Assembly (NCBI GenBank): GCA_038496445.1 | Contig: JALMLS010000370.1 | Span: 186,001-250,000, forward strand | Length of the DNA stretch: 64,000 nucleotides | Direction: 5' to 3' | Source: Trichosphaerium sp. ATCC 40318 | Taxonomy: Eukaryota; Protista; Tubulinea | Part shown: positions 8,811-62,900 of the stretch, piece by piece | Position numbering within the stretch: position 1 is the first letter of the stretch | Layout of the letters: every line of letters begins with the position of its first letter | The notes under the pieces: generated by a model | What the model saw: only the letters and a program-made list of their open reading frames with translations | What the model was told of the DNA's origin: nothing | The model's database searches: none | Program-made: the position numbers and the translations under genes

Positions 8811-10636
8811 TTACCAAAAATACCACTTCGTACGTGATACGCCTAATCTCCCACTTGAGGCTCTAGTGCTTTCTATAATTTCTTTTAAACCTCCTAAGTC
8901 TCCTTTCCACCAATACGGTACAATAACAAGGGTAGTATCTGTATGTTTTAATTTGGAAAAAAAAAAGTAGATAAAAACTGACACATACCATTGTCAAAGC
9001 AAATTTGCGCCTTTTCAGTATCTCTGCTCGCTGTAAGGGCAGAGTGGCAAGTGTGTGACATGTCGTGATAATGTTGCTCTCCTAGAAATGTTGTTTTAAT
9101 AGATAGTCAACGTGCAAAGTAAATCTGTTTGCACCTTGGTATTCAAAGGCTGTCTTCAATTCGTGAACATAGATGTCAACGTGAACATTTGTATTTGATG
9201 AAAACTTAGATGTCAACGCATGCTCTTCTGTTACTCGCATGTTCGGATATAGCAATGAAACGCAACGCAGTAGCCATCTATGGCGTATTACTTGAGATTG
9301 CTATTCAGGAAGATTGATTGATACCTTTGCTTTGCTCGCTTTGTTACTGTAGAAAACTTTGACCAATCCCAGTTGTAGCGAGGGAACACTTGATTCAGCG
9401 CAAACGGAAAATATCTAAGGACACCCTCTCCCCCACACTGTGTGAGTTGTTCTTGGGATATGCGATACCTACCACACGTTATTACAACGCATAATTAACA
9501 GTGAAAAGTACCATGAACTTGGCGTATCAATGCTGTGCTGTCTTGTAACGGACTCCAAAAACGACACTTGATTTTTTGGGTTGTACCAGAAGCTTTTGTT
9601 ACTTCTACACTCAATTTATTATTCGTTAGGTAGATAAGATGGCGTACTTGAATAGCCATGGCAGCCACAATGATGATGGGTAAACAGACATGACTGTACG
9701 GGATACTGAGTTACCGTACCTGTGCTTGCAATCAGTCTTATGTGCATAGCTCATAAAAATAGCGTACTTGACCATTGTACTTGCAGCGTAGTCGTACAAA
9801 TCACTATGAGAAGTAGTGTACCAATCACTTAAAATTTTAACATTGTGACGTTGAGCAAATTTATCAAGGTGAGTTGCTTGCTTATTGCCGCTTTCCCAAA
9901 ACCCATCAGGACATCTCCTAACACATTGTCACAGATGTAAATAAAGGAAGAGTTGTACCGAAACATACTGGCATCGAAGTAATATTCAGGGAAGGTAGCA
10001 GACAGCATTTGGAATACGGAACATTTATATCTGTTAATGTGTCAGATTTGATAAGTGGCAGGGAGTGACGGACTTGTTCAGTATGCCCCACCCTCCTTGC
10101 TCAGCAATATCTTGCTTTGAGACATTGTACCAATCTTGCATAGTAGCTAGGCGCAGCAAAAGGCCGATTTTGTTTAGCTTTTGGCGCCTGTTACCAACAT
10201 CGTTCCAATGACCATCAGAAACTTTTCTAAGTTTTGGCACTCGTTAGAAACACGTGTCAAACGGCCATACCTCTTCCGTCCCTTGAACTTCTGTCTTATC
10301 CACCGGTACCTTGGATACAACGTAGCCAGAGCGTTTTCTACAGATGCATACCTGAAATGAGTGTCAAGGTGTTAAAATACGTGTGCACGTTACTTGAATA
10401 TCACTTGAGACCCTCTTTTACCGCCCAGAGTAGAACTGGGTACACTGTACCAATTTTCTAGTTCTTTTATGCCTAGCCGTTCTGCAACCGCGTTTAATTC
10501 GTCTCTTTGGTGCTCTAGTACATAAAACGGGCGGTTTTCGGTGTTTTCAATACCTACGTAATTTTCAACGCTAATACAACTACTTCTAAATGGTTACAAG
10601 TGTATCGAGCGCTTTTCAAAGCACTATTGGCAATCA
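8811..10636 (-). CDS. Trp-rich helical repeat protein with C-terminal Vsr/RAP-like PD-(D/E)XK-fold nuclease domain (copy A)
   Basis: About 4 repeats of the type GHWND..RRQKLNKIG..DWYNV..GGWGILNK..L...FPEY.F, then VDIYVHELKTAFEYQG-EQHY..RDTEKAQIC..LVIVPYWW. Start uncertain. Confidence 0.75.
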
Positions 10637-10829
10637 TTGTATGCGAGTACAAGTTCGTTTGTTCTTATTTATGATACTCTGCTATCGTTTCTAAGGTATC
10701 CTTACATGACAATTAACTGACAGTTTGAAGATTCCTGACTGCGACTTTTACGAGTGTACACAAGGAAAAAAAAGCGTGTATTATTTTACAAGTACTATTC
10801 ACAAATGTTACACTTTCTACATTCTCATC

Positions 10830-12475
10830 TGTCATCAAATGCTGGATCTACCCTGAGAGTATCTATGACCATGGGCTTCTGCAGGACTCATGAATTTGGG
10901 CATGTTAACTGAGGCAGTAAGTATTTTAAATATTCAATTCTTTCGTACTTGTTTCTTTGTCTGGTACAACTCGCAATGCTAGTAACGGTTTCGCACCAGG
11001 AGGTACATCTAAGTTTAGTGATGGCATATAATACATCAAGGTTGCTGCCATGCTTTCCTTGTCTCCGCGCCACCAATACGGTACAGATATAAGGCAAATC
11101 CCTGGAAATCAATCAAACGCTGTTTAGTCTTTCTCAGAAAGATGAACTTACCTTGTTTGTGACATAAATCAAGCTTCTCAACATCTCTACTGGAGTGTAC
11201 TAGCGCCTCTGACCGTAATTTGGCCCTGTCGTAGAAGTGCATTTCGCCTAGTACAAATTATGTTAGAATACATATAATTCGCCACGTGATTTTTTTATAC
11301 CTTGATATTCAATGGCAAGATTGAGCCTACTAACAAACATATCTACCACAAATGTTCTTTCTTTGGTACCTTCTTTACAAGCGATATAATGCTCTTCCTC
11401 AATCTTATCATAAGGAAGGAGTGATTGTATGCAATAACGCAAGTATCTATTGTTAAAAGGTTTTAGATGAGATAACAAGAACAAAATGAGTTTTACCGTT
11501 GCTTTGCTTTCTTTGCAAATATACGAAAACGGCTCATGTCAAACTCAAATTTTGGATATATCACGTTCAATGCTCCAGGAAAGTAACGCAGTAAGGATAC
11601 TCCGCCTTCGAATTGCTCAACTGATATTCTGTACCTTCGATTATAAATACACGCTTGTAATCACGTTATTTTTGTACCAAGACTCTGGGGAATTAATATT
11701 GTATTTTACCATCATTTTTGATAAGAATTTGATTTGATTCGTTGGACTCGTCCAAAAGTTCAGTGGCTTTGTTTTTCTACACGTTGTATTAGACAATCAC
11801 TCCACCGAATTACTGTTTGTCGCCTTACTTAAAATGCCAGCTATGGTTAGGGTATATTGTAGGAAGAGCGCGAGACAAGGAATCTCCATACCTTTGATAG
11901 TGTTAGAAGTGAGGACGAGTTGACACAACAATCATCGTCTTGTGACGTACTTTTTGAGCCATCCTCTCATCTTCATTCGCTTGATGTCTCTAAATTTGAC
12001 ATTGTGCCAATCGTCCAGAGTCTTGAAGCCCTGTTCTTCTGAGGTTATTTCCATCATATCTCTTTGGTTAGTTACACTCTTCCAATGATGAGAGGGAGCT
12101 AGTCTAAGAGATTAAGTGCTAGTGTCACGATTGGCATGCAGCGTACGTAAATTTCCATGGAATCCATGCGTATTCGTTATAGGCGCTTCTTATTGCGTTA
12201 TACACACTTTTTTGTCTAATATGTCACTAAATACATTGAACTGAGCTGATGCATACCGACGGAGTAGCCCATTGAATCCTGCATTCTCTAGGTGGGCGTA
12301 GGTTACGTTGTACCAATCATCAGCCACTTTAATGTTATTTTTTATCGCATAATCATCGAGCGCTTTACGTCTATTGAGCTCTTTTTTCCAATGAGATGAA
12401 GCTGTCCAGTGTCTTGTTTGATAAACGGCCTATACATAGTAAGGTTAATCAAAAAGACAACCACTATACCTGCAT
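10830..12475 (-). CDS. Trp-rich helical repeat protein with C-terminal Vsr/RAP-like nuclease domain (copy B, tandem paralogue)
   Basis: SHWKKELNRRKALDDYA..DDWYNV..GFNGLL-type repeats, then VDMFVSRLNLAIEYQG-EMHFY..RDVEKLDLC..LISVPYWW. 3' end approximate. Confidence 0.75.
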
Positions 12476-12588: not shown

Positions 12589-15500
12589 ATGCGTAGAAGC
12601 AGAGGAGCGAGTTCCAATAAATACTACAGTGATAAAGGCAAAAGATACTTACTTCGTGAAATAAAACAATTTACAAAAACTGTGTCAAGATTTCAACGGC
12701 GCTAAATTCTGTGTATAGAACTACGAAAGAAGCTTGAGAGTGTAGCAGAGAAACTCTCTGCTTTAAGAGCTGCTGCAACAAAAGTCGTTAATGATGCAGA
12801 TACGCTGTGTGATGTCGTAAATACGCTTATAGAGGTACTTTTAAAATAATTTGAGCAAGGTTAGAAAAAACGTTAATACAAACTACAAAAGGCAACTTCT
12901 CTTACTCACCATGTACCGTTGGTGTCTCCTGACAAGAGGAAAAAGTCAAGGAGCAACAGGGAGAAAAAAAATAAAAAAGAAGTGACAGATTCTTCAGAAC
13001 TCAAACGCAAACAAAAGTACAACGTCCATTAACGCTGACAATTCTAATATTAAATGAGGCCAAAATTAACTCGCGTAAAACATTTCAAGATGAACGATAT
13101 ACCTGTAAAACAAGATCACTGGGCGGTTTTAGTAGCCGGTGGCAGTGCGTTACAGCTATAGATGTCCGTTATTCATGAAATCTTTAGTGCCTGGAGTAAT
13201 GGAAGATCCTACGCGTGCAGCATCAAAAATGACGTTTCTACAGACTTATGATTACTTACTGAATACGGCTGGCTTTCCAGTGAATAGAATTTATTGTTTG
13301 ACGCCCATCAAATGGATCTCACATATAAGAGGTCCTTGAATCCTTACTTGAGATAACTTTTCTAATCCAAATATATCTAGATTCCAAAGAAAAAATAGAG
13401 CGACTCAAAGAGTTTGTCCCTGGGTATAGCCCGCTTGTTTGCTTCCAAATTTAGACTTACCCTCTTGTATAGACATCCACTTTTATTCTATATAAAGTCA
13501 TTAGAAATGTGTGGACATAGTTTGGAGATGGCCGCAGCTTGGTACCTTTTTTGACACTTTTTTCAAAATAATTTTAATGTTTTTCTCAACGTAATAACAC
13601 GTGTTGTAGGCTTGTAGAAAATCAAGGCGTTCTTGCCTCTAAAATGAGAAATGATAGGTATTATTTTATACGGAGAACCATTTTGGCCGTGTTGCCTGTA
13701 GTACAAGTCGTAGCTGACATTTATTTCCCTTAGAAATGATACTGGTACTGGGGACGATCCACTCAATATATGTTATAGCGCTAATATGTGGCGGCCTGCT
13801 GATCCAAATTCATTCACAAAGCTATTACAAAATGAGATTGATGGTGTAAACAATTATGTATTCACGTACTACATTGGTCATGGTCGTACAGATGTTGTAA
13901 AAAAGAAAAAAAAGAAAAACAAACGAGGTGTAGATGTATCATTGCACGAGCATGTGCACAGGCAAAAACGTGCGCGCTGGTGGTACGATACACATGTTAG
14001 GGCGGAAAACAGATATTAACGATGCTATGAACAGGTTACTGTTTCCTGAGAAGGGCAATGATGAAAATGCCAGAGGCATCTCACATTTAGAAACAGCTGA
14101 AGTGCGTCATTTACTGTTTGAATGTTGTGTCTTAACTGCTATTTAGCATCTTGGTTTGATGAGCTCTGATCAATCTGCTATTGATACCACGGAATACTCG
14201 CTTCATTGGCAGTCACTATTGCGTACTGTTTATAGAATTTCTACTGGTACCTTTACACTTATTGTTTTGATGATGCTTACCCTCTCTCTTCCAACTCAGT
14301 CCGTGGAGGTACATTAACAGCACCTAAAGTGTCTTGTTTTACCCTATTTGCTGCTGCTTCATGCAGTGGCGGTATGCTCAAGTGGACCAATGAATATTCT
14401 CTTGACAAACGAATGAATCCTGTTTGTTTTGAAAAAGGTGATGTGCTTTGCTTGTTACCATAACAGCTGTTATCCTGATTATATGGCTTAGGTGGGTCAC
14501 TGTCCAATAGAGAAGTATCAGAAATATTCCCAGAAATATCAACAGCAGAGTATTCTTTATTACGTCAGCAACTTAAGGACATCCCAGTATTTGCCATTAC
14601 GAGCGCTGACCATGAGTATTATCCAGGGTCCTTCTTTTCAGCAAACTGGTACCTACATATCACTTGTCTTGTGACTTTGTTTGTATCATTGACAAACAAA
14701 TAATTAGGTTGCGACGTGCTGTACAGTGTATGTCTAGTACCAATGTGAGTTGTAATGACTTTTACAAGTCACTTCATACATCAGATCAAAGCGATATTGT
14801 AGACTCGTTGATGGTATCACAGTACTCCACAAACTCAAATCTCTTGGTACCAATATATATCCAACCTGTTTTGTTCGTTTATTGCCTAACTTATTTCTAA
14901 AAAGGATATGCCATTGGAACGACTGCTCAATTTCGCTAAAGGACAAGCTCAAATAGGTATGCAACCAACCTTCATTACTCTGCTTACTAACAGGATCAAC
15001 GTAGTATACGGAACACCTATGTTCTTATCAGCTCGTGCCAATCTAACGCGACATGACACTCCTGAGGACCTAACTTTAAGTCCTAATGGGAAATCTAGCT
15101 CTACAGATGCCAAATACGAGTGGCAAGCAGCTAGAGATGCGACTAGAATTGAACAGTGGTGTACAGCTGTAGCTACAACCAAAGCAAATTTCTTGCCATT
15201 GACGGTATGTCTTTATATTGCCATAGGTTTTTAGAGGTGTCCTCTACTTACAACAAAAAGGTTGAGAGCGCACAAACATTGGTTGTTGCCAATACAATAA
15301 TACAACCAAACGCTATACTATCTCAACATGATGGAACAGTACTTCGACAATTAAAATCAAAACTACGAAGTATGATTGAAAACGACTTTGGCGGCAAAGC
15401 CTGTGTTAGAGTATCCAATAGGAATTGTAGCGATGCTGTAGTAGGTAGTATAAAAACACAGGAATACTATAGAACCAACGTAGCAAAGTTCATTAGCAAT

Positions 15501-17870
15501 ACAACGGCACGTGTCACACTCGTTTTATAATGTTTTTCTGAAATAGTGTTGCTAAAATGTTGACCAAACAGGCTGATGGCAGCGTTTTGAATTCCCAATT
15601 ACAATGCCTTGTTTCGAGTTCATTAGCTGCATCACGTGTTACATCAGGCGCGGAAGCGATTAACCTGCTTACACACAGGTAACATCTGGTTTTGAATTCT
15701 TTTGTTGAGGTTTCTTACACACTTATTTTGCTTACTTACTCTGTTAGTTTACGTGTCGGAAGTGACATGCAGTGGCGGCTTTTACGTATGGGAACCAGTA
15801 ACAAGTACGACAAAGTGACAGTAGAGGCAGTCATTTATTCTTCTACAGGACCGAGTTGCTTGACTTTCAGATTGTATTGACACCTTGGACTCCAATGGAT
15901 GGCTCAATGATGTTCCGTGGATTTGTTTATGATGGTGAACTGACTGCTATTTCGCAATACTAGTACGTATTCTAAATAGTGAAGGAATTTGGCTAAGGGT
16001 TTGTTTCTCAGCACTTTGTGCTATTATCCCAATATTCAAGCCAAGAGGAAGCTTCAGGTTATTTTGGAATCAGCATTTGCGTCTTTTAGTGACGCTCTAA
16101 ATGGTGCTTTAACATCTGATAACTACTGCATCGACTTTTATGTTGGTCGCGATGAGAAGGTGTTGGTTATGGATATTTGTCCATGGGAAGTTGCCAACTT
16201 TAAACTGTTTGACAGATATGCTGATGGACACTCTCTCATGAATGCACCAGTTGAATTCAGAATCGTTGGAGCTATTAACCCTAATATTTTAATGAGCGGG
16301 GCTGTTCCGCAAGCGTGGCAAGCTTTTATGGAACCGGAAGCAGAAGGTACCAGTCAATCACTAATTATATCATTGTAATTGTATTAACTTTTTTGGCATA
16401 GAGGATTCGTTGGAAGGTCCACCTGAAGATATGCCTTCAGATGTTGTTAAAGCGGAGCGTGCATTTATTTCAACTCATATGGGGATAAATGAAGAAGGCG
16501 TTGAGTCTGAAGTACCTTATTGTGACGTGCTAGACGTAATTAATGGTTTCAATGTATCTTCTAGAAGCTTGCCTTGCCTTCGATACACTGACATGATGCT
16601 CAGTACGCCATTAACCACGTGCTCGCATAAATAATTATTCGGCAATAGGTCCTCAAAGAGCAGAAACAAAACAAGCAGTCAAGCTATTTTGTGACACGAT
16701 GCAGCAACGAGGGTAGGTAACCTTTCTTTTATTTTTCTGATTTATTTTAGGTTTTGTGTACTCAACTTGGAGAAGGCTATGGTGACAAAGATGCAAAGAA
16801 TCACTGAGTACGTCAGAATTACAAACTGGCATATTATAACGCAATGATATTTAGCGCTGCTTCAACGTTCTTTGCAATGTCTCAATCGCAGAGGAACAAG
16901 TTTAAGAAGGTGGGGTATTCCAGTCATTACCCTATTTTTGAATCCTTTAAACTTCCATTTTCACAACATACTACGAGTTATCCTTCCAACGATTTCCAGG
17001 CATGTTTTCATCATTGTTACATGACATTACTTTCATGTTGCTAATAAGAGTAGGCAGCTGTAAAGGACTATTATCTACTAATTAATGAGCTTTCATTATC
17101 GCTTATGGGTGTTCTCAGCAGGGGTTTTAACTTCCCCCAAGAGGAAGTATTAAAGTTAATTGAGAACGCTAAACCTGATGCAGGCAACAGTAGCTCCTTG
17201 ACGTACGTTCATTATTGATTTACACCGTAAGCACGTGATTGCTAAGTGTTACACAGGATGATAAACTTTTTTAAAGAAAAGTATTATGATAAGACACAAG
17301 CCAAAGGCATACACGTCGACCTTGGTACACTAACGTTTGTTCCATTAGCCAAGACAACAGGAATTCAAGTACGCTAGCTTTTGAATGTTGTTTTGTTTAA
17401 ACTTGTGTCAAGGTATATGACAGAGCATTACAATGTTGGATTAATGTTGATGCTACTTACCCACGTGTACCAGATGGAATGCTCGTATTTTGTGGAGATG
17501 TTCTAAGGTACTATTTTTGTGATGTTGGTGAAATGAAAGCTAACACAAGCCACAGGGTACTTACAGGAGGATACATTCAACCTGTCCCTCATAGAATAAA
17601 AGTATGTTATTAAATCAGTTAGTATACGTCAACTTATTTCTTCTCTAGCCTACTACTGTTGATAAAGACTCAGCATCTATAATGTACATGTGTCAACCAC
17701 CAAAATCAGAACCTATAGCGACACTGCCTAATAGCTGCCTAAAGGAGTGCGCACACAATGCTTACAGCGCATCATACACAGACTTCAAAGATTACAGTCG
17801 TAAGAACACAAGAAGGGCACTCACCAATTACAACGAGCAGTTGTTTACAAGTAAAAAAGCCACTTCTTGA
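12589..17870 (+). CDS. Multidomain fusion: legumain/C13-like peptidase + Cdc123/R2K-type ATP-grasp + 2OG-Fe(II) oxygenase (IPNS/DIOX-like)
   Basis: Peptidase: DHWAVLVAGG, VFTYYIGHG, FAAASCSGGM, PVFAITSA..FFSANWL. ATP-grasp: RIEQW, CVRVSNRNCSD, TSGAEAINLL, FRGFVYDGELTAISQY, NYCIDF..MDICPW..LFD. Oxygenase: QRGFCVL..FFAMS, HVDLGTLTF..GIQV..W..MLVFCGDVL..TGGYIQPVPHRI. Exons join in frame. Confidence 0.75.
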
Positions 17871-18231: not shown

Positions 18232-18838
18232 CTAGCATCGTGTGCTACCTGCTAATGAAGTTGTGAGATAAAAAAAATAAAATCGAATACTAAGACCAGT
18301 ATTGCAATTTGGGATCAATTAGTAAGGGCTATACCTGTGTTATAATACGGTTTGATGGACTTGCTAGCTAAACCGTTTGTATACGTTTGTTTCCAAATCT
18401 TTTCAGTGCTTATGACGTTGTTTGTATTGCCCAGCTCATCTACCTTTGTATCGCTTGTAAAGTCGTACAACCACTCTCCGTCTTGTATAAATTTATACTG
18501 ATACGTCCCTGGCACGTTGAGCTTTAGCTCTAGTTCAAAGCCATCTGCTGTCTAGTTTTACGAGAAGCGTTAGCAGTTTTGTCGTTATGGTTCGCAAATA
18601 AATATCATTTTGCGTTTGTATTGAGCTTTACGCCATTGTCATGAACGTAGCGCCCTTTGCAACGCTAGTAACGTACTTTTTTCATAGTCCTTTTGCCTTT
18701 CCAACCGTCCCACGACCCGGCAAGAAATACTTGCTGTGCGTACATATTTGTCCATTTAAACGTAACAAAGACGCGGTGTGGAAGGTCTTCTTGTTCGTAA
18801 GGCGCGTAGTCGTTACTCAATAGATGAGGAAAAGACAT
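18232..18838 (-). CDS. Small CBM48 (AMPK beta-type glycogen-binding) domain protein
   Basis: VTFKW..QVFLAGSWDGW..PGTYQYKFIQDGEW..DELGNTNNVI. Confidence 0.85.
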
Positions 18839-19055
18839 TGTATCGAGGTCACAACGCACCGACTGCTTTACTGGGCGTTCCGTAGCGAAATTGCGCCACT
18901 TTGTAAGTCAAAAATGACTTAACGTTTCGAAACTCATCAATCAAATCTCTCAAGTAATAAAGCGCAGCGACGTACAACCCTACGTCGATTTTCCTGAGAT
19001 GCCGGAAAAAAAACGTCAAGCCGGAAAAACGCTTTATTTTTTTTCACAAGCAAGT

Positions 19056-22000
19056 TTACAACTCATTCAAAATGAATTCCATCTCTTCCCTGATAATCTG
19101 TGCTGATTTGAAGGCTTTCTCAACCTTGATTACAGTTAGCATAAGTAACAGGTACACAGCTCCGTACCTTTTCTCCGCCAATCTTCTTTAGAGCCACCTC
19201 AGCGGCTTGACGGATATTACTGGTGGAAAACATTAGTATTGAAAGTTAATTACAAGAGTTTGTGTTTAGTTTTTGTTAAGTTTGTATTTGTTGTGTACCT
19301 GATAGGGCAATTCTTCCATTGGTTTACAAGAGGAGCTATACTATCATCATGCTTGTAACGTGCAAGTGCGATACAAATAGCTTCCTTTACGAATCTATCT
19401 GGCTCTATTTCGAGTCTCTTCAACAAAGGATGAACTGAAAAAAAGTAAGTTAACCCATTTGTATTGCGGATAAAAACCAATTCCGGAAAAAGAAAAAAAA
19501 GAAGAATGTACCAGCTTTAGGGTTTCCAATCTTTCCTATATTGATAACTGCCCACACACGCACATCATCATTCTACAAAATAGCATGTGTTACTAATAAT
19601 AGACTTGTTTTGGAGAGATGGAGACATTGCACGTACCTTTTCTTGAAGCATCTTTAACATAATATCTAAATGTTCTAGTTTCATTTGGTCGCTCTTCAAA
19701 GAGTACGCCATCAACCTGTTACGCTGTTCATCGACGTCTTCGCTCTAACATCATTAAGTTAACAAACAGATTCGTCGTATAAGCGACAAAGGCCTTGACG
19801 TACTTCAATACCACCAATGAGTTCATCTGCTGAGAGCATCATGGTCTTTGGTTTAATCCAATCTTTCCATTTGATAGCTTTTGCACCACCAAGACCAAAG
19901 ATTTGCACTTTTTGTAGGATGCTTTGAATTTGATCTTTCATAATCGCTGTATCTCCTGATACCGCGTTTGATTTTATATTCTCTTCTATCAATACAGTAC
20001 ATTTAGGGAACTGTGACTTGACTTGTTCTTTCAGAGCTACAACAGAAAATTAAACGACAATCATGACGTAAACAATAAAAAAGGTATGGTACCATCAATA
20101 TCAGCGCCTTCAATATCTGGTATTACAAGTCGTTGCAGTTGACTCTTACAGGCCTTAACAAATGACATGATAGCACTCTCTCCCATGATACAGTAGCTAA
20201 AGAAATCACGTGAATACAAATATTTGGATGAAAGAGAGCCTTACCTGAGATCAAGCTTGCGCAAATTAGGACAGTATTTTGCAATGGACAACAATCCTTC
20301 CGCAGTAATCTATTTGCATTTGTTAAGAAGTGTAAACTATCAATATATTATATGTACTTGGTATGCGAACGGTAATAGTATACTATCTATTTTCTTGTTT
20401 ACATCTGTGCGAAGGAAGGAATCTGTAAAAAGTAGAGTTATTTCTTTGGGTTGGCTAATAATGATGAGGCAAAGCAATTACCCAAAGAATTATCATCGAT
20501 AATATTCATGGCTTCAGATAAATCAAGTGGCTTCTCTGAGCTATAGTATTTTCTAGCGGCCCTAAAAAAGAACTTGTGAGCTCTTGATTTGTGCTCAATT
20601 AATCCTCTAGTTTTATCGTACTTCAAGAAAGGCTGGGTAATGCGTTTATCATTCTTGGCTACAGCAGCAATCCTCAGCGTTATGGCAAGATCCAATTTCT
20701 GATTTTTGAATGATTGCTCCATGAACAAATCCATACAGTGTCCATCGCCACTGACCTCAACAGCTACAGCCGTGGTGAGATTCAACAAAAATGATGAAAG
20801 TAGATTACCTTTTTTGAATTGTTCAGCAGCATCAGTGAACAGCTGTCTTTGCCTTGACACGTTATCGTTTGCACTTGCACCCCAGTACGCCAGTACAATA
20901 CCCCAAGCACGGATCGACTCCCAATCAGAAGGATCCATGTCAACAGCATCAGAAAACTTATCTGTTGCGCCAGCATATAGCTTATCAGCAGCTTCACCCT
21001 TTAAAGTAATTGTGAGCTTCAAAAAAGCTTAAGATTTCTGTACCTGCTTATGTCTAGCGCGGGCGAGAAGCATGTCACCCCATTTAACCAAGGTACCGTG
21101 ACTGTCTAAAGTTCAAGGATTATTGGAAGTCAATGAATATAAGTATGTATGCATACCTGTAGTTGTCTTTACAGCGTTTTCAAAAGCGTCATTAGCTAGA
21201 TCCCATAACCTGTCTGCTTCTTCCTTTGATGTAGAGTCTGCTGTTGCACGAATCGTCAATGCATTACCAAGGGATGAATAAACGATATTCATCTGTTTAA
21301 TAGTAGCTTCTAATCCAGTGATATCTGCGTCAACCTAGGCACAACAAGCAATAAGTAAAACAAAAGGAAAATAGTAAATCCAAAAAAAATTTGATGAGAT
21401 GTGTACCAAAACAAACGAGTCGGCAGCTGCCGATAATTGAGTTACTGCCTTTGGTGTTAGCAGAATACCGACTTGCTGGGACATATCAAGCATAATATCA
21501 GCAATATCCGCATGTAAGTACTCGCGAAGATCAAAGCTACATAAGGCTATTAAAGGTTTTGTTGATGTGATAAAGGAAAGTTTTGGTTTTTATGTTTACC
21601 TATCTTTCATCTCATCTTTGGTCAATGCTTGATCAAACCTCATCATTATTTCCTTTTTAAGTCTTTTTGAGTAAAAGTTCTTTGAAGGAACCTTTAGCTG
21701 TTCAGTGTTACCCAACACTAAGTTGAAAAAGTTCTTAACAATGGCCAAGTAAGGTTCTTGCGCAGCAATCCTCACTTGACGAACCTAAAAATAGAGTTAG
21801 CACAACATCAACAAGGCACTCTGGCCAGTAATGTAACAATCAAACATAAAAACACTTACTCGTTGGCGCAGTTGGTCTCTCAGCATATTCTTGAGTGTAC
21901 GAGCTGCCAATACAGCCAAGCAAACTCTTTTTGGTTTTGGGAACTTCAAGAGAGCTCTTACTCTACCAAGGTGTCTAATGTTGACACCAACACGATGGAT

Positions 22001-24852
22001 TTTGTAAGGTTGAAGCTGTGCTTTAAAAGCTTCAAGATCAGCATCTGGTCCATTGAACTTGTGCTCTTCTAAAGTGCGAACAAATCTTGGAATAGTTTCG
22101 TTGTACAATCGAAGTGTTACAGTTTGTACTTGTTTATTATCAGCACGTGCCATTTCCTATAAAACCATTAGATTGTAAAACACAGAAAATAAATTGTTGT
22201 TTTGCGTACTCTGTACTCTTTAGAGAAGAACATGGAAAATGCATCAGGGTTAAGAGGTTGAGGGTTACGTTGCACGAATTCAGGACGTAGGAATCGCCAT
22301 AAGTGAACACCTCTTCGTGTAGTACGCTTCGCAGGTGGAAGATACGGCGCCTCTAGAAAATTGTTTTTTTAAGCGAACACTTTAGAGTAAACAATCGTAC
22401 CTGGTGGGAACATTCTAGCCGTATCGACAACGTAAAGTTGTCCATCAGTACCAACATGTCCTTCTACATCACCTGGACCACATACTTGCTTATCAGAGAC
22501 CCAATGCTCTTTGAGATTCTTGTTTCAAAATCATCAGCTTAATAATGTAAAAAAGTTTGTCGTACAAGTTTTTCTGCTACTGCTTCCATCTTAGCAGACA
22601 TATCCTCATTTTCTTTCATGACAGTGGTACCACCGTCGTCACTTAAAAATGTAAATTGGGTTTCAACTCTAAATATAAGTGCATTACCTTCCGTAGACGA
22701 GTGTTGTCTTTGTAATAGGCAACAATGATACAGCAATAAGTCTGAATCCTATGCGAGTAGTAAGCAACCGACAACACTGTTAATAGCTATAATACCTCTG
22801 TAATCAATCAAACACATGAGAGGCACTTTCAAACCGGGTACTTGAGCATCGTAAATAGCACCCAAGCCCCTTTGAAGAAAACGTTAGATCATGGAACTTT
22901 TTCTTGTGAAATAAAACATACTTCAATTCAGCACTTGCTGCTTTTGCGCTGTACTCATCACCACCGTATATTCCATGTAAATCCGTCTGGTAAACGTAAG
23001 TATTATTTATATGTGATACTATTAGTACGTACAGTGAACTTGAATAAGATGCCTTGAGCAATATATTTCTAAATAAATCTCACGTGAGAAACAAAAATCG
23101 ATGAGTTTTCGAAAATGAAACATACTTCACCGCCTGCTACACCACCAACGTTGACTGGTTTAATGGTTTTGAGGGAAGGAGGTATCATAACCTCTGAAAT
23201 GATAATACGACCGTATGTTTGTGCGCAATAAGCAAAGTCATTGGCGAGACCTGCCAAAGCTGTAAACTTGTGTTCACTGTTGTGCCTTTTAAGCAACGTC
23301 TAAGATTTTGTGTCAACCTAAAGTTTAAACAGTATGAAACGCACTTGGAACTCTAGATTCCAATTCTTGATTGGTGCTGCTTTGTTTGAGTCGTCATCAG
23401 TTGATGCCACACTAGAGTTTTCAGAAGCGCTTGAGTAATCCTATTCAGATGTTTTGTCAATAAAAGATAAGCAACAACCAAGCGTACTTCATCTGCGCCA
23501 TATCGTTCGTCTGCAAAGTCAAGATACGAGTCACCTACATCGCCATCATCGGCGCCATAGGCGTCAGGTGTATCAAGTGCATAAGGATCTTGGTATGCAT
23601 CAATAACATCATCTTCATCTTCCTCCACTTCAACATCCATGGCATAGACGTCACCGTAAGCGTCTTCCTTCATATTACTCTCGAGATTTTTTGCATCAAT
23701 CTCTGGTACACTGAAATCAGTGTTAGAATCGTTGAATAGGCTTTCACTATCACTTACTCTTCTTCTTCATAATCAACGTATCCAGTAGGTTGACTTGGCG
23801 GTGGTGTCTTTGATTTCTTCTTTTTCCTCGCGGTGCTAGGTTTTGATTTGGATTCCTCTTCAGGATCAATATATCCAGATACTGGGTTCTCTGTAACTCA
23901 AGGATTAGCTTTGGAAAAACAAACCAAAGAAAAAACATAGTAAGGAATCCAAAACACTTACTTTTTTTTTCACGTGGTGATGGTTCTTGGCTTTCTTCTT
24001 CGTCAACGAGGTAACCTGCAACTTTATTCTTTGGTTTCTTCTTAGGACGCTTAGAAGCAGAGCGTTTAGGTGGGTTTTTCTATGGATAAGTTAGACTGAC
24101 GGACATAAATCTCTGTCAGTATTACCACAGGTTCATCCTCGTTTAGTACAACATATGCTGTCTCCTTGAGTTGTTCACCATCTTTCTTCCAGTACGCATC
24201 AACCTTTTTTTGACAAAATATTAATTTTATTCGCTAAAGTTCACGTGATAAACAAACCTTGCAATTAATACTTGCCTTGGATTGTTTTCTTTGATCTTCT
24301 GCCACAATTTTTATCTGAATAGCCGCCTAATTGACAATGTAAAAACACAATTCATAGTATTAATCGCAGAGAGGGTATAGAACCTTATTTGCGTATTTTT
24401 TAGAAGTGTTTCTTAGGTAACTGATTTGTTCTGTTGATTCTATTTCAGATATCTTTAATTCTCCAATCAGACGCGGTTTTAGGCGACGTTCATGCATACA
24501 CTTGATTCGTATGCCCTCTACTTTTAATCCTGTAGAACTAGAGACTTCGTTAGGGTTTGTTTTAGGAAATAAATAAACGGGCCGTACAATTGTAACGTGG
24601 TATCCCAGTCAATCTGCGGTTTACTAGAGCGCCCCACCACAGTTGGAGTTTTTTTTGAGTCAATAACGCCTAATAAATCGGTTATTCTCTAGCCAGTAGT
24701 GAACACTGTACCATCAGCGCCTAGTAGCGCTACCTCACAGTATAACCCCTTGTCTTTTGGCAAGTCTTTACCAACGCCAACTAAAATTGTTTGTTACAGG
24801 CTTCAAAGTACAACAGCGTACTTGTGACCTTGTATTGTTTTTCTTTGCTCAT
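19056..24852 (-). CDS. C2 + Clu (clustered-mitochondria-like) domain + TPR-like + LRR + HEAT repeat protein
   Basis: N-terminal C2-like strands; acidic linker; Clu core DFAYCAQTYGRIIISE..GGVAGGEKY..GILFKF..AELKGL..PLMCLIDYRG..GDVEGH..YVVDTARMFPP; VTLHKYCPNLRKLDL (LRR); DRFVKEAICIAL (HEAT). Confidence 0.8.
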
Positions 24853-53981: not shown

Positions 53982-56900
53982 TTACACAAAGGCATTCCAT
54001 GTTGGATCCATAGATGCTAAATTATCAGGACTTGTTGCAGCTTCGATTAGGTCTGATATCTTTTGATTTATAGGACGTTCAGAAGCCAAGGTATCACGCT
54101 TAATTGTGATGATTTGGTGTGGAACCATGTTCTCAATGCCATCAACAATTGTTCGCATATTTTTCTCAACAAGGTTGTCCAAGTTAGCTTCAATATCAGT
54201 TCTATCAGATACACGTGACCATTGGATCAAGTCATCTCTGAAATGGAGACGAAGCAAGTCTCTGAGTAGGTGCTAGAGTGAAAATGTGAGTACGACGAGT
54301 TTTTTTGGTAGAAATTTGAATGAGTGTGATTACGTACCTTTATTTTAGGCTCGACGAGAGTACGCGCCATAGTTGTCATAACAGCGTTAAAGCGCCCTTT
54401 CATGCATATTGGGTTAATGAATCGTGTTAAACTCTGAGACAAGCGGAATGGTACAGCTTCCTTGTTGCTTAAGAGACCCTCGTCATTATAATCTAAACGT
54501 GTAGAGTTAGCAACGTAAGATACACTCTAACTGCAGCGTACTTGAACGGAAGAGGTTGTAGAATACTTGACCAGATGTGCAAGAGAAGAACAACTTATGT
54601 GCTGAGATATCAGGAACGCTCAGAAGGTGAGTCTAGAAAGAAACAGACATTAGTGAAAAAGACAATTATTTTTGTTGTAATAGAAAAACGTACCATGAGA
54701 GAACCAATACCTATCTGATTGACAAAGTGCTGCTTAAAGATCCAGCGGGACTCATAGTTCTTATTCAACTTATTAGAGATGTATTGCTCCAATATCTTGC
54801 TGTCAAGGTGGTTTTCAGAGATATCCTTGTACAAAGACAAACGTGTTTCAGGTGTAAGTGCTGCAACAAAAAAAACATTAGTAAAGGTTGTAGTGTCAAA
54901 AAAAATTAACCAAACGTACGTTTACTACCAGTGTTATCCATGTAATGTTGTAATAAGAAGTCAAAGTCTTTGCCGTTACGATTACAATGCTTACGGAAGA
55001 CATCATCCAAAGAGAGGAAGTCTCGTTGTGTCTACAAAGGACGAGGTGTTAATGAGTGACCAAAGCGCAGAGATTGTGTTTGAACAACGTACGGATATAA
55101 GGCGAACATGATCATTGAGCATAACAAACCTTGGAACACGAATATACATAGCACGACGTCGTGCATGGACGCCCTTTTTAAGAATACGATTTACAACAGA
55201 AGATAACTGAGCAACACGACCTTCAGCGCCCCAATCTGCATTTATACCATAAAGTGAATCAGGGTCAACATGTTCTTTTGTTCGTCTTGTTTTTGCACCA
55301 ACTATTCATTTAAATATTAGTTAACTGGAAGGTCCTTCAGGTGAAACACAAAGAGTTTTATCGTACCACCTTGACCTGGCTTGAACATCTTTGCAGTAGG
55401 GAAACGACGAGAGTTGTGTACCAAGAACCAGTACATACGAGCATCAGAACCCCTGTAAGAGTGGTATAAGAATATAGAATAGTTGAGATCCTTTGGAGGG
55501 TCAGGAAGGCTTAGAATACGTACCTGATCTTTATCATGCGTTGTGGTAACGTTTGAGATCGTCTGACCTTCATAGGTGACTCGAATTTCTCAATTCTAAC
55601 GCGTCTATCTGGGTTTGGCATGTGATCATTGCCCTCAAAATACTGACCAAAGATATCAACACCATTATGGTTCTGGAACTGTGCCAGAGGATCAGAATGC
55701 TTCTCAAGAGTTAGGTAAGGACCAATGTCATCAACACGCTTCTAAAAAGGAGAGGTGAGTCACCGCAGAGCAAACTTGTGATTAGGTTTAAAGAGGACAT
55801 ACAGTAAGACGTTCAATCCAGACTTTAATTGTATCTATGCAAGTGCGAAGATCAAGGTCATCTCTTTGAAAATCACGCTCAAAGTCGTCCTTGTAGGTTT
55901 GTATAAAGGTATCATTCTTATCAACATTATGAGCAAAATTGAGATCAAATACTTGTTGTAAGCAAGCAGTGAGGTCAACTTGCTTAACATTTGGAAGCTG
56001 TGCAAGATTCAAAGACTACAAAACAAATGTTAAAGGATGACTGACTATAAAGAGCAAATGTACCTTGTGACAGTCAAGGAGTAAGTTCTGAAGGATGACA
56101 GACAGATCCTCCTCAGGAGTTGCAATGATTCCGTTCGCTAGTTCTCTAGCAATGAGTTCCATATCTCTTATCAAGCAAACATGTTGTTTTGTATTGTTCA
56201 TTTCGTTCTGGATCTCATGTGCTGCATCAAGAGCTGCAATTGGGTCACAACGAAGAGGTGAGTCTGGGCTGTGTGGAGATTGGGATAAACGCTTATGAAG
56301 CTTTTGTCTCTCACAAATAAAAGTCTTCAATGGGTAAAACAAGGACTACAAATAGTTTGTTAGGGAAATCAGCAAAAAATACTTTTTTTGTTAAGTCATT
56401 TACCTGAGGCGCATATTTCGCGACCGAACAGAGGATAGATTGGATCTGTTTTGCTTCGGATCTCTCCAAGCTTGATAACAAGTTAGGAATCCATGGGAAC
56501 CACACATAAGCTGGGAAATGAGCTGTTTGTTGTTCCATAAAATGAGCAAGTTTGTGTGTTTCAGGAGAATCAATATCCATATCATCATTGTTGTTGTTTT
56601 CAGCCTCATCCTTACCCTTTGCTTTGGCGCCTTGTAATAATGTTAGCTTTGTTATGGACTACTATATATTATACTCACCACGTGCTGTACGTTGGCGTTT
56701 GGCAGGAGGTTTCTTGGGTGCAGAGCCAGCCTAGAAAAAGCAAGGTTAGGAAATCTTCTAAGAAACAAAGCAAGCTGCGTACTCTCTTTTTCTCTCCTTT
56801 GATTGGAGAGTTTGATCGTTTATCAAGAGGCAACGCATCATAGTGATCATCGTATCCAACAAGCCAAAGCACACGTGGAATTAACGACGTAGAGCTCAGT

Positions 56901-59900
56901 TTTGAAGGAGCACATTTGATGCCTTGCAAGTAGCAGTTCAATGCAAACTGTGCCCATGTCATCTTTACTGAAGGATCAGTCTGATTAGTAAACTGCCTAT
57001 CACAGTATCGGCCCCATGACGTCCATCCCTTAGCGTTGGTCTGCTGCAAGGATATAGCAGTGGCGTATGAGGTGTTAGCCTCTTCATAGTAACCCATATG
57101 TTCAAGGACTTGACCACGTAAATGAAAGAAATTGGACTGGCTCTTCTTATCAAACGGCTTGATGTTTGTCGAGTTGATGATGTCAAGACCTGTGCGGTAA
57201 TGCATAGGCATACGCAAGTAGCACTTGATTTGCTGCTTTTGTTTACCATAGGCATCAGATACATGGATAGCAGGCAGTTTGAAGCTATGAGGTAGGGAGT
57301 TAAGACAGACCTCTATTAGACCTTGACGTCTGGCAACTTGAGCGAACTTGTTATTCGCCCAAGCAGATTCGTGGTATCCAATAGCAGGGTTTATAGCAGC
57401 ACTTGCAGACGTTGGTTGATGTGCTGGCTTGTTTTTATAGGCTCTGTTGATGAGTTTAAAAACATGTTGTCTCCAATAAACTAAACGAAAAAGAGGCTGG
57501 TAAGCAAGACATAAAAATGAATTAATACAAAAAAAAGACGCACTCAAATCAGTCCAAACGTTGATGTCATCCCAAGGATTAGGAAGACGTTCTCTCCACG
57601 TACTAAAAGAAAAGAAATAATCAGGTAAAGTTAGGTGAAAGAAAATACAAGAAAAAAGGAAGAAACAGTAGGAAGGAAAACTCAAAAGCCGAATGAAGGT
57701 CCTAAGTACTTACGCAATTATTGTTGTTACGTCAGGAACCTTAGCCATTGTCTGACCAGTTGTGATTTCTTTTACAATCTTTGCAGATTCGTACAACTCA
57801 ATGATTTGTTGGTAAGCCTAAGTATTAAAGTAAGGGTCTAAGTTCAATTCCAATATCTTTTTTTCCTCCGCTCAAAAATAGGTTTTAAAAAGAACTAACC
57901 TGCAAGAGTGGGCCATGCGCTACAGAAGGAATCCTTGGTTTGATGTTCCAATTTGCAACCAGAATATTCATAGCTTGTTTACAGTACGAATCGACTTCAC
58001 TAATCTTCATGTTTTGAAGTGCAAGGAACGATTGGTAGATCTTAATCTTAGGCACGTCCATAGGCATAGCGTAATTAGCAAATGTATCTTGTAAGCCCTC
58101 CTAAAACAACATTCGTTAGAAAGAGTACATTACTCTCAAATCATTGCATATGGCACGTACCCAATCGCCTAGTTTCCAAGCACATTCAGCGTAGAGTTGT
58201 GGAAGTTTGTTTACTTTGGAGTAATCAGCAAGAAGCTCCCACTGGTTCAACCTCTTGGCAGCTTCTACCCAGTGTACCTCCCACATTTCTTTTTCTCTTG
58301 CAGGGACATTAGGCAAAGCACCTAAAAAGAACATATCAGTAAATGAACTACGTATTCTTCCAAAAAATATTACCTTCTTCCTCGTTTGTAATAGCTTCGC
58401 TGAAGACCTCTTGAGCGCGCTGCCAAAGACCTTGTTGTTCAAGAACTAAGCCGCACTGGGACTCTTTGATCCTACAACGTTCGAGAAGAACACCGTAATA
58501 CAAATCTGAGGCACACAAAGTCTTGTAAAGGTGTAGTAACGCTTGAGAAATCATGATATTCTCTGGTTCCTTAACAAACCTGTCTTCAAGTGCTTTAATG
58601 CATACATGCCAACAATTGTAATGATGAGCAATGTAACGCAATACAGGAGGATCAATAGAAGGCACAGGATCTTTACATTGCATAAATCCACCGACAAGAG
58701 CCTTTTGGAGAAGGTATTAGAGCAATCAAAGGGAACAAGGTGAAACGACAAAAAAAAGTTGTTTCGAATTGACGTCCAAGCGATGCTCGGTTACGTCCGT
58801 GTCAACAGCGTTCAAAAAGTTAGGGAAAGTAAAAACGTACTTGTATGACGTTAGGGTAGAGTCTACTTTGTTTTTTGTGATATTGCTTAGATAACAATGC
58901 AACAGCACTTTTGTTAATGCTCTCTTTTGTTTCAGCATCAAATAAACGCCAAGATCTTGCAAATATTTTACCCCATAGATCAGTAGCCAACATAGGGACA
59001 TAGGTAAGAAGCTCACAAAGCGGTTTGAGAAGGTCATTCGCTGTTGTGTTCGCAACCATGTCCAAGAAGTACTTATGTTCGTCCATCAGCTTCTTTGCTT
59101 CGGCAGGCAACTTTGAATTCTTTCCAGTGCCTTGACCCTCACTGAGAGCTACGACTTTGGAAGAAACCTAGTAAAAAAGTGTGAGCTCAAGCCTAGAACA
59201 AAGTGATTGTACAGAAGACATCTTCAAAGGTTGCTTTGAGTCAACAAGGCCCAAAACAAGCTCAATTGCTTGTTGTATCCAGAATATATGAGACAGTGGC
59301 TCCCAAGTGTTAGGGTTAATAATTTTATGCATCCTAGCAGTTAAGGTTCGAGGTATCCTAAAAAGGTAACCAATAAGTAAACATTGTTTACACTCTTTTA
59401 AAAGGCGCGTGCGTACATTTCATTTAGAATACCAAAGAACCTCTTACGCATAGCAGTATCCTTATTAGCACTACAGCAACCCATAAGGAATGCTGATTTA
59501 AGCTCTTTCATCACAGGTGCTTCCCAGTTTTTGTTTTTGCTCACAAAGTGATAAGCAAGCTCCAAGAATTGACTTTGAAGCGGTGCACTACGAACCTATA
59601 AAAAAAAAATTTGTTAACATGGTTGAAAATGTTATAAGTTCTTTAGCGTACTTGTTCGAAACGTCTCATCCTTGTTATGACAAGAAGTTTAAGTTTAGGT
59701 TCAACTACCTCATCACTGCTTGCTGTCACCCACTTCTTCAGTATAGCAGATAATTTGATTAACAACTGCTCGTCATTGGAGCTCTTGATGAGGTCCGTCA
59801 AGACAGTGAATAGAACAAGTTTATCTGGTATACTTATATCACTGAGCTGACCATTCAATAGTCTTACAGTAGCCATCAAGCAAGTTGTATCACGTTGAGG

Positions 59901-62900
59901 TTTAGCTGTTCCATTTCTCATTGAACGTAGAACCATTTCTTTCTCTTCAGGTTTAACAGGAGCCAAGTTGATAATAACCAATCGCTATAAGTATAAATAT
60001 CAAACAAACAATGTCAAATTATCCTTTGAGGTACGTACCTTTACAAGCTTGACAAGAGAAGGCAAGAATGATTTCAAGTAACCTGGAGAGTTATCTGACA
60101 TTGCCTTTAATGTATTTATCGTTGAGACAAGAACATTCCCATTGAGACCTTCATTCATCATTCTTGTGATCATATCATACAATGGTGTGCAAATACTTGG
60201 GCCCATAACAGGGTACACACTAATAATGCTCTTGAGCAATCCACACAACGCTTCATTATCCTAAAGAAAGACACTGATAAGCAAAAAAGAGAACAAGAAA
60301 ATCAAGTATTCCGTACAGCAGGCTTATCACTCTTAATAGTAGAAACAAGATCATTACACAACAACTTAATATTTGATTTAAGAAAATGTTGTTTTTGATG
60401 TTTAACAACAACAGACAGCATGTTCAGTGCAGTTGTGTTAGGTATAGCCGGATCACGAAGTATTTTTTCAAAATGCTTTGTATTGATGGTCACTTGATTC
60501 CATATTTGCAATGCATCCTCTGAAAGCTTCAAGGCGTATTGAGCTATTTTCTAAAAAAAAAAGGCAAAAGTCAGTAAAAACTGAAAAAGGGTAAGGAAGT
60601 GGTATTGTACAAAACGTCGTACGACAGCTGACGATTCTTTGGCGGGTTCAGCACTATTCAGTGCCATTCGCACAAGGAAATCGACCGCTAGAGTTGCTAC
60701 ATTGGGTGGCGTCTCATAGTCTTGTATTTGGCCGAGACCTGGTTGTGCAGGAACGTTATCCTTATTTAAAGCACGACGGCGTTTCTCCCAGCCAATTACT
60801 ACTTCTACGATAGTCACAGATAGCCTTCTATTCTCGGATGGAGATGTCGTAGGTAACAGACCGATACGTGGTAATGAATTGACTACAGAAAAAAAGTTAA
60901 CAAGTTGTGCTGCGCAACTGAAAAAAAAACCAAAAAAAACAAAGTCAAAAAACATCTCACCCATTTGATTTATGAACTGGCTTCGCCATGGAAAGAATAG
61001 ATTAGGATGGCGTGTAAGTAGCTGTAATATATGAATCAACTGAGGCATGGAATGACCTTCTTCAACCAACACTTTTCTGGTCCATTTAATCCAGTGAGGT
61101 TGTTGATTGATAGGTGTTTGTGGGGTAGGTGCAGTTCCAGGTTGTTGTTGAGGCTGTAACTAAAGAGAAAATATGAGATTGTAACAATTAACCTTTCAAA
61201 TACACGTACACGACGTTCAAGAGAGGGTGTAAGTATATCTAGAGCTTCTCTAACCAAAGCTGTTGCTTCTGGTTGGTAAGCACGAAGTAAAGCAACGTAT
61301 ACTTGTAAGATAATCTTTGGAGGCGTGTCATAAGCCTCAATGAATCGAGCAACGAGTACGTATGCACTAAAGAAAATGAAAGAGTTACAAAAAGAATACT
61401 ATAATTAGTTTGATGTTACCTATGCTTGGTTGTAATATCTTCATTCTTTAGATGATTCCAAGCGAATTTAATCAACTCCTTACGATGTTCTATCAAGTCT
61501 GTAGGTTTGTACAATACAAGCAGTGTTGCCAATTGAAGTAATTCAATATTAAGTGCAGCTTCGTCGTAAATTGGTATAAAAACGTCCTAAAGAAACGTTA
61601 GATTAGCCAACATACCCTCGTAATGCCACAACTTTCGAATAAAAAAACGAAATAATACTTACCCCTTCGGCTTGACGAGAAAGTATCGTAACAACAATTT
61701 GTCTGATCATCTAATCAAACAAAGTCAGCAAAAAAAAAACCCAAACACAAAAGAAAATTAAGTACATGAGGATCCACAACTTTAGTGTTCTTATTCTGAA
61801 AGGTTTTTCTCATCAGAGGAATTATCAACACCTTAAGAGCTTGAACACGATGCGAATCAGATGATGTCTCTCTGAAAAACTCCAAAAACTTTAAAATAAC
61901 ATGTCGTTTCTGTTCATCTGAGTATGTCTAAGATTCCAGTCGTATTAGTGGTTTGTAAGGCATTATACGTGATGCGTACCTCATATATCTCATTACGATA
62001 GAAATTACGGACGTTGGAGTAATCTGTTGTAGTACGCATAGTGAATACCATCAAGAGTTGGAACAGTACAAGAGTATCATCCTTGTGTTGACGGCAGTAC
62101 TTCAAGAAAATGTTTACCAAAAGCTTTGACTCTCGTAAATGATGTAAAGGAAGCTCTTCCTCTCTGTCCAAGCGCTTCTGGCGCTATAATACAAAGTTAG
62201 AAGAAAAACAGAGACCCAGTATTATTTTTAACATACAAATTCGCTCTTCCATGTTTCAAGCAGGCAATTACGGACAGCAATGCATCTCGACAAGAAAGTT
62301 GGGTCAAACTTGTATAAAACATCAACAATTACTATTCCTTGGAACTGAGCTTCAAGCTGGTACTACAATTAAAATAAGAATAACACGATGGATGTAAAAT
62401 GTTTTTGCCAAAAAAGTTCATGAACCGGTTTTTTACCTCTTTGACCTGCGATTTGAATGTACATTGAATGAACTGTTCTGCATTATCCATGAGCTCATTA
62501 CGTAGGTTATCTGCCATGTCAAGATTGAGTATAAACCAGAAAGACTTGCTGAGACGCTGTTCATGGATATGTTGAAAGAAATGTTGAATAGCTTGTTTTG
62601 GATAAGTATTCAGAAACTTTGCAAGAGGTTTTCGGTATGGACTGCTAATATTACGACAATTGATTTGCTCAAGTTGTGATGTGATCGTAATTAAAGGTTC
62701 CAAGAACTTTGAAGCTGCAGGAGGCAGCAAGTGAAAAGTTTCGATAATAGCAGCCGGAATATCAATAATTTCATCCGTCTCCTAAAAACGCAACTAAGTC
62801 AAAAAAAAAAAAAAGGATCACGTGATAAATTGTTTTCCCTTCTAAACACGTACAGTAACACGAATTGAAGACATCATATTCGGTGCTGTACGAACTTGAG

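Follow-up and report, generated by a model that had tools for sequence, protein, structure and literature searches.

In legumain (MEROPS C13, PF01650), the S1 pocket sets the specificity for Asn/Asp (PMC5995516), and the human enzyme with the D147G mutation still cleaves but no longer ligates (PMC4506564). The human protein CDC123 has been shown to be an ATPase chaperone, and its residue R111 contacts the beta/gamma phosphates of ATP (PMC12860950). For the R2K proteins of the same ATP-grasp family, peptide ligation is only a prediction (PMC4431377), and ligase activity is demonstrated for no R2K protein in the consulted portion of the literature found. In oxygenases using 2-oxoglutarate (2OG), the Arg of the RxS motif binds the C5 carboxylate of 2OG (PMC4396695).

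Here we describe a gene of Trichosphaerium sp. ATCC 40318 that very likely combines these three folds in a single protein. It lies in a window of 64,000 nt (the whole stretch of DNA that was analysed; contig JALMLS010000370.1, positions 186,001 to 250,000), to which all coordinates refer. According to our favoured reading, to which we assign a probability of roughly 0.45, the product would be a cytosolic or nuclear clan CD protease of re-wired specificity, with two degenerate enzyme domains serving as binding or sensing modules. The gene and its main parts are:

12589..17870, + strand: whole gene, 30 exons, 29 introns of 38-76 nt, model of 1251 amino acids (aa)
12589..13095, + strand: N-terminal region (exons 1-4, aa 1-115), rich in basic residues, including a helical stretch plus Lys/Arg clusters resembling nuclear localization signals
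13096..14956, + strand: peptidase domain of the C13 type (legumain-like, clan CD), aa 116-533, interrupted by four large inserts
14957..15004, + strand: probable junction-1 intron of 48 nt, keeps the frame and contains no stop; donor GTATGC, branch CTAAC at 14 nt before the AG
15005..15114, + strand: linker 1, aa 534-570, coding score +12.2 for the fusion frame, negative for the other two (-9.3, -10.2)
15067..16346, + strand: R2K/Cdc123-family ATP-grasp module, aa 555-888, degenerate, identified by D123 and a family hidden Markov model (HMM)
16347..16401, + strand: junction-2 intron, 55 nt, frame-shifting, GTACCA donor, TTAAC branch 14 nt from the AG, 27% GC
16402..16559, + strand: linker 2, acidic (Asp/Glu at 15 positions within aa 885-945), coding score +14.1 for the fusion frame, negative for the other two (-26.3, -10.6)
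16560..17870, + strand: IPNS-type oxygenase domain (DIOX_N + 2OG-FeII_Oxy), aa 942-1251, identified by HMM

Gene model and domain junctions

The spliced model runs from the ATG at 12589 to the TGA at 17870 and, in a three-frame reading, comprises 1251 codons with zero internal stops. This agrees with the preliminary description, a short note made from the letters alone, in which the exons were said to join in frame into one gene; the linkers score as coding as well. Introns are of the GT-AG type in 28 cases and GC-AG in one, the latter being modelled because the oxygenase helix must stay continuous. All introns except two are obligatory, i.e. frame-shifting or stop-containing, and the GC content is 41% in exons and 34% in introns. 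With a 3-periodic Markov model, for which twelve unrelated open reading frames (ORFs) of the window served as training set, the coding score in the modelled frame was positive for 30/30 exons, this frame being the best of three in 29. The distance from branch site to AG is 9-20 nt within the gene, with a window-wide enrichment at 11-18 nt.

Transcript evidence comes from one public run holding the stretch (RNA by guess), with contigs at a depth of 2-4. Four introns (13145-13187, 13332-13380, 13983-14034 and 15679-15747) appear as joints in these contigs, and two more (14102-14146 and 17602-17648) as loose ends matching the next exon. The contigs touch parts of all three domains and give a 3' untranslated region (UTR) of at least 52 nt. 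Three out of three coding differences between RNA and DNA are synonymous, and the single indel is an in-frame 3-nt insertion at 12639. Spliced RNA in all three parts of the gene, together with the synonymous differences and the in-frame indel, is a small sign that the gene is under constraint. Introns 1, 17 and 19 were found unspliced in RNA contigs, and each has a frame-keeping alternative placement. Special cases among the introns are:

17000-17053, + strand: probable GC-AG intron (CAG/GCATGT), in frame, contains stops
12656-12718 and 15488-15546, + strand: frame- or stop-bearing introns, unspliced in RNA contigs that show splicing at other places
15805-15848 or 15815-15870, + strand: intron 19 in two placements, the second of which suits the family length better

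The unspliced copies at 12656-12718 and 15488-15546 reflect either intron retention or DNA within the run. The RNA contig retaining intron 19 carries a G>A exchange at 15815, which is the G of the second donor. It has to be noted that the placement of the start codon, exon 1 and intron 1 is uncertain in the model. A candidate intron at 13886-13933 was excluded; it has no branch signal, and an RNA contig extends into the interval. An altered genetic code was ruled out, the stops sitting in AT-rich GT-AG introns, several of them RNA-confirmed. A plain pseudogene was ruled out by the intact frame, the splicing and the synonymous differences.

At the first junction, ORF 14908-15234 had been taken to lead without a stop from the end of the peptidase fold into the start of the ATP-grasp. 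The ORF is indeed stop-free from DMPLERLLNF to RIEQW, but it is not one exon: the probable in-frame intron 14957-15004 interrupts it, and the ORF ends inside the following intron. Three acceptors are possible for donor 14957: 14993, which shifts the frame and leads to a stop at 15002-15004, and the two in-frame sites 15004 and 15031. We favour 15004 over 14993 because the latter needs a branch-to-AG distance of 3 nt, outside the enriched range of 11-18 nt. At the second junction, the GT-AG intron previously placed between ATP-grasp and oxygenase stands, with a typical donor and branch and its low GC content; a second AG 2 nt downstream of its acceptor (16403) would give a stop. Both junction introns score as intron in the coding model.

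We regard a single three-domain protein as very likely because both linkers receive coding scores in the fusion frame and a split gene would leave stop-to-next-ATG gaps of just 14 and 52 nt. The locus could instead give rise to two or three separate proteins, either from packed genes or from dominant splice forms ending after the peptidase or the R2K module, which we consider rather improbable. A stop after the peptidase would result from acceptor 14993, and one after the R2K module from retention of intron 16347 or use of acceptor 16403. In-frame ATGs are available at 15019 and 16431, the three introns seen unspliced suggest that retention happens, and RNA coverage is absent over 14270-15254 and 16043-17618, hence at either junction. 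On the other hand, gaps of 14 and 52 nt leave little space in view of the gene's own 3' UTR, the 3-nt distance required by acceptor 14993 falls outside the 9-20 nt of the gene, and the scores of junction introns and linkers argue for fusion.

Catalytic sites of the three domains

Applied to the spliced model, profiles recovered the three folds that had been proposed, the match for C13 being weak. The functional motifs lie at:

13876..13884, + strand: Gly281-His282-Gly283, catalytic His retained, Gly at the position of legumain Asp147
14356..14364, + strand: Ala391-Ser-Cys393, catalytic Cys retained, Ala at the position of S1-pocket Glu187
15408..15437, + strand: RAGNYA two-basic motif, Arg650 and Arg654 retained, SPK changed to NCS (Lys to Ser657)
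16172..16180, + strand: metal-binding ExN/DxN motif, here Asp-Ile-Cys, Asn changed to Cys833
17312..17320, + strand: iron ligands His1113-x-Asp1115, retained; the third ligand, His1175 at 17590, is retained as well
17670..17678, + strand: RxS motif, here Ser1186-Ala-Ser1188, 2OG-binding Arg lost

With C13 profiles built from 120 legumains and 102 prokaryotic C13 proteins, hmmsearch gave 8.2 and 9.7 bits, which is weak yet exceeds all 1000 shuffles, and three motifs come in the correct order. When only prokaryotic C13 proteins went into the profile, the domain could not be told apart from shuffles. In hhalign, the C13 score was 32.4 versus 15.4+-2.7 for shuffles (n=40), i.e. about 6 standard deviations higher, and the alignment is collinear across the core, interrupted by the four inserts. 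C14 metacaspase was rejected as a better identity, its profile scoring 23.5 versus a shuffle maximum of 23.4 and thus below the 32.4 of C13; an Atlas search with exon 9 returned a metacaspase at 0.84, which is a lead only.

Shared with legumain are the succession of strands and helices in the core (WAVLVAG through the last strand), the dyad of His-Gly and Cys, and the presence of a C-terminal module at the prodomain position. The assignment of His282 is clear; Cys393 falls on the catalytic Cys in hhalign and also on visual inspection, a helix being followed by a strand as it is in legumain. In contrast to legumain, the protein is devoid of a signal peptide and of NYRHQAD, its S1 residues are changed, Gly replaces Asp147, the His-Cys spacing is 111 residues instead of 41, and there are four inserts, one of them very basic. 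The S1 residues R44, H45, E/D187, S216 and D/N231, which do not vary across 170 C13 rows from eukaryotes and prokaryotes, are not retained, and Gly before the catalytic His is also found in 46/51 prokaryotic C13 rows. Past aa 530 the legumain HMM matched nothing, i.e. there is no match to the C-terminal LSAM prodomain. By family membership, the domain would be of the clan CD protease type and not an asparaginyl endopeptidase. A C13 protease without signal peptide and with an emptied S1 pocket would represent a natural experiment in specificity change of the legumain fold.

The absence of a signal peptide and the basic N-terminus had been pointed out before and are confirmed here: Lys/Arg account for 31/115 of the first residues, and hydropathy revealed neither a signal peptide nor a membrane helix (top 19-residue value 0.63, near the start). 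The insert encoded by exon 13 (14494-14580, aa 418-447) is placed behind the catalytic Cys, ahead of the following strand. Its Atlas matches at 0.89 to DIP2311-like_C and DeoR helix-turn-helix clusters are leads only, and Pfam was blank for it. The helix-turn-helix likeness, together with the basic N-terminus and a poly-Lys insert after His282, hints at nucleic acid binding.

In the case of the ATP-grasp module, Pfam D123 matches exon 20 (E 7e-6) and exon 21 (E 3.6e-5). A search of 1.84 billion representatives with exon 21 returned the R2K relatives P0002 and P0003 plus two repeat artefacts. P0002 is a full standalone relative (28% over aa 571-883), and its family of 44 proteins includes members from amoebae and other protists, such as Pellita, Protostelium, Physarum, Balamuthia and Willaertia. 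An HMM of this family matches aa 555-891 with E 1e-56, across the RAGNYA and kinase-like subdomains. To judge from its sequence, the module is a member of the fast-evolving amoebal R2K.1 set of Burroughs 2015 (PMC4431377; PF07065). These ATP-grasps are multi-copy in amoeboid genomes; the module matches them over its full length, and some relatives are fused as well. One of these is P0030 (ENA, 536 aa), in which an R2K domain is joined to a Ras/Roc GTPase. Our module differs in having enzyme folds fused on both sides, and 9/22 near-invariant columns are changed versus at most one in any of the 44 relatives, although these conservation counts are inflated, the relatives having been gathered by shared words. 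A fusion of R2K with a peptidase or a dioxygenase is absent from the consulted portions of PMC4431377 and its supplement. In the family tree, the end branch of the module (2.84) is the longest, the median being 0.82.

The first basic residue of RAGNYA is Arg650 (K or R in the family), whereas the second, K in 43/43 relatives, is Ser657, at the position of human CDC123 R111. An RNA contig (15399-15582) matches the DNA at this motif. The ExR motif reads Met760-Phe-Arg762, with Glu lost and Arg retained, and the adenine-strand Arg is lost at position 750. The fold is that of human and yeast CDC123, and the acidic residues Asp818 and Asp831 match D233 and D246; however, the module is not the conserved orthologue, its R111 equivalent being Ser and its N248 equivalent Cys. 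CDC123 provides a precedent for an R2K domain acting as a protein-binding chaperone (PMC12860950). Going by these residues, weak nucleotide binding is possible and ligase chemistry unlikely. An amoebal R2K module that is reused without its catalytic residues would bear on the question if the expanded Cdc123-like domains are ligases.

For the oxygenase, an HMM of 120 IPNS-like proteins gave E 5.7e-8 and 22.0 bits versus a shuffle maximum of 3.4, and the alignment is full-length, through DIOX_N and the core of the double-stranded beta-helix (DSBH). The HxD...H triad and the following Arg are shared with IPNS-like and plant DOXC oxygenases (PF14226 + PF03171). Different from these, the RxS Arg, present in 120/120 family rows, is replaced by Ser1186 where the alignment has no gaps, the HYP strand lacks its Tyr, and the domain is the C-terminal part of a larger protein. 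RNA contig 17649-17922 matches the DNA at the RxS site. An assembly error behind the losses at Ser657 and Ser1186 was ruled out, as RNA matches DNA at both. Iron binding by this domain is likely, and canonical 2OG turnover appears doubtful.

The preliminary description had proposed that the protein cuts, ligates and oxidises peptides or proteins on one chain. This proposal is unsupported because key residues of all three domains are lost: in the R2K module about half of the predicted catalytic residues, among them the second Lys, the adenine-strand Arg, the ExR Glu and the DxN Asn, in the oxygenase the RxS Arg, and in the peptidase the Asn pocket, with Gly at the Asp147 position abolishing ligation in legumain (PMC4506564). 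Three active enzymes on one chain are, in our view, very improbable, even though the three folds share one frame, the dyad and the iron triad are retained, and five R2K residues persist, including both acidic metal ligands (human D233 and D246). Moreover, there is no adjacent precursor peptide or pathway gene, the neighbours looking unrelated, and the proposal would call for an R2K ligase activity of which the literature cited at the outset, in its consulted portion, holds no demonstrated case.

Another possibility is a self-processing polyprotein, in which the protease would only free the domains by cutting the linkers, and the oxygenase would be active independently of 2OG with another substrate or reductant, in the manner of ACC oxidase or IPNS. 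We give this scenario a low probability. It would fit the flexible linkers, the second of which is rich in Asp/Glu, and the intact HxD...H, and clan CD autoprocessing domains do occur in bacterial polyprotein toxins. Yet in IPNS the RxS Arg serves substrate binding, so that this enzyme uses the very same Arg for its own substrate, and the S1 pocket allows no prediction of a cleavage site. ACC oxidase speaks on both sides, working without 2OG but retaining the binding motif (PMC4191161).

Proposed role of the fusion protein

In the reading we favour, the C13-derived cysteine protease would be the sole domain with a full catalytic core. It would cleave via the His282/Cys393 dyad, and presumably at residues other than Asn, since the pocket for Asn is missing. 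With no signal peptide and with its basic clusters, the protein would be located in the cytosol or nucleus and not in the lysosome. The R2K module, standing where legumain has its inhibitory prodomain, may act as a protein-binding scaffold that holds a binding partner or the protease itself, similar to Cdc123 holding eIF2-gamma, and would not be a ligase. The oxygenase fold would bind iron, probably without canonical 2OG chemistry, and may serve as a ligand- or metal-binding module. Both modules would restrain the protease or deliver it to its substrate, and the protease would probably be activated by cutting its own chain within the two flexible linkers. Survival of the dyad in a domain so diverged that its whole profile scores <10 bits would count for a protease.

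Clan CD proteases gated by attached non-catalytic modules are exemplified by MALT1, separase and bacterial CHAT fusions. These likewise combine one active caspase-fold protease with binding or pseudo-enzyme domains on one chain (a likeness by description, no sequence link being claimed), but none of them carries an ATP-grasp or DSBH fold. Cell-death and defence proteases are little known in this lineage, in which the protein might represent a cytosolic protease under regulation.

Several points weigh against the gated protease. The hhalign probability of the C13 match is 16%, the weakest of the three fold matches, and MAFFT puts the strand of the catalytic Cys 20 residues earlier, in a stretch without Cys. 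Residual activity is possible in both other domains: the R2K module retains Arg650, Arg654, Arg762, Asp818 and Asp831, and Lys1184, two residues before the lost RxS Arg, could partly substitute for it. The inflated R2K conservation counts and the RNA gaps at both junctions have to be kept in mind as well. Protease activity and the binding of a partner are predictions from the sequence, which gives no clue to a substrate, and single-exon queries found no orthologue showing which residues are selected.

If all chemistry is lost, the protein would be a triple pseudo-enzyme acting as a scaffold, or a drifting fusion left by lineage-specific domain shuffling under relaxed selection. Functional-site substitutions in every domain, the longest branch in the R2K tree and the low RNA depth of 2-4 are consistent with this. 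We nevertheless hold it to be unlikely, as the protease dyad and all three iron ligands persist despite heavy divergence, the frame is intact through 30 exons, and the coding differences are synonymous. A further idea has, in our estimate, a slim chance only: a legumain-derived protease that has moved out of the lysosome and that two sensors of enzyme origin switch on would amount to a decoy-gated caspase-fold protease of defence or stress. The pseudo-ligase would then bind targets or mimics of the R2K effectors of Legionella and giant amoeba viruses, and the iron-binding oxygenase fold would report iron, oxygen or a metabolite; the slim chance applies to these two parts jointly.

Homologue searches and neighbouring genes

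The architecture had been called undescribed, and we likewise found no protein, contig or paper with this layout, which is a weak negative, as the queries were single exons rather than the whole product. The exon 21 query revealed neither a copy of this protein nor a long fusion among the 1.84 billion representatives, and a literature search on the three-domain combination found nothing. Metagenome scans with exons 21 and 30, a viral scan with exon 9, tblastn against phages and plasmids, and PDB searches with exons 12 and 27 were blank, all being sensitive to close relatives only. Pfam searches with 20 single exons gave D123 alone, the exons being too short for the other two folds; Atlas with exon 12 and Rfam gave nothing. 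The gene looks as if it arose when a module already known to be expanded was shuffled in this lineage. Its value is limited in that it is one fast-evolving copy for which no orthologue was found, with junctions not covered by RNA.

The upstream neighbour (8811-12475, - strand), arranged head-to-head, has repeated units and a restriction-endonuclease-like end. It lies about 110 nt from the ATG of the fusion gene, so that a shared promoter is possible. The downstream neighbour (18315-22600, - strand) is arranged tail to tail; its exon 18315-18515 presumably encodes a glycogen-binding CBM48 domain of the AMPK-beta type. Several long ORFs at 56675-63917 (- strand) belong to what we take to be a TRRAP/Tra1 gene.

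Apart from this window, we noticed a eukaryote-type legumain (L080:2865-4175) on a 167-kb contig that is binned as a Nitrosopumilaceae archaeon. Its closest matches are environmental proteins of about 400 aa, some of them on long contigs, and it possibly represents a misbinned giant-virus legumain or another legumain clade.

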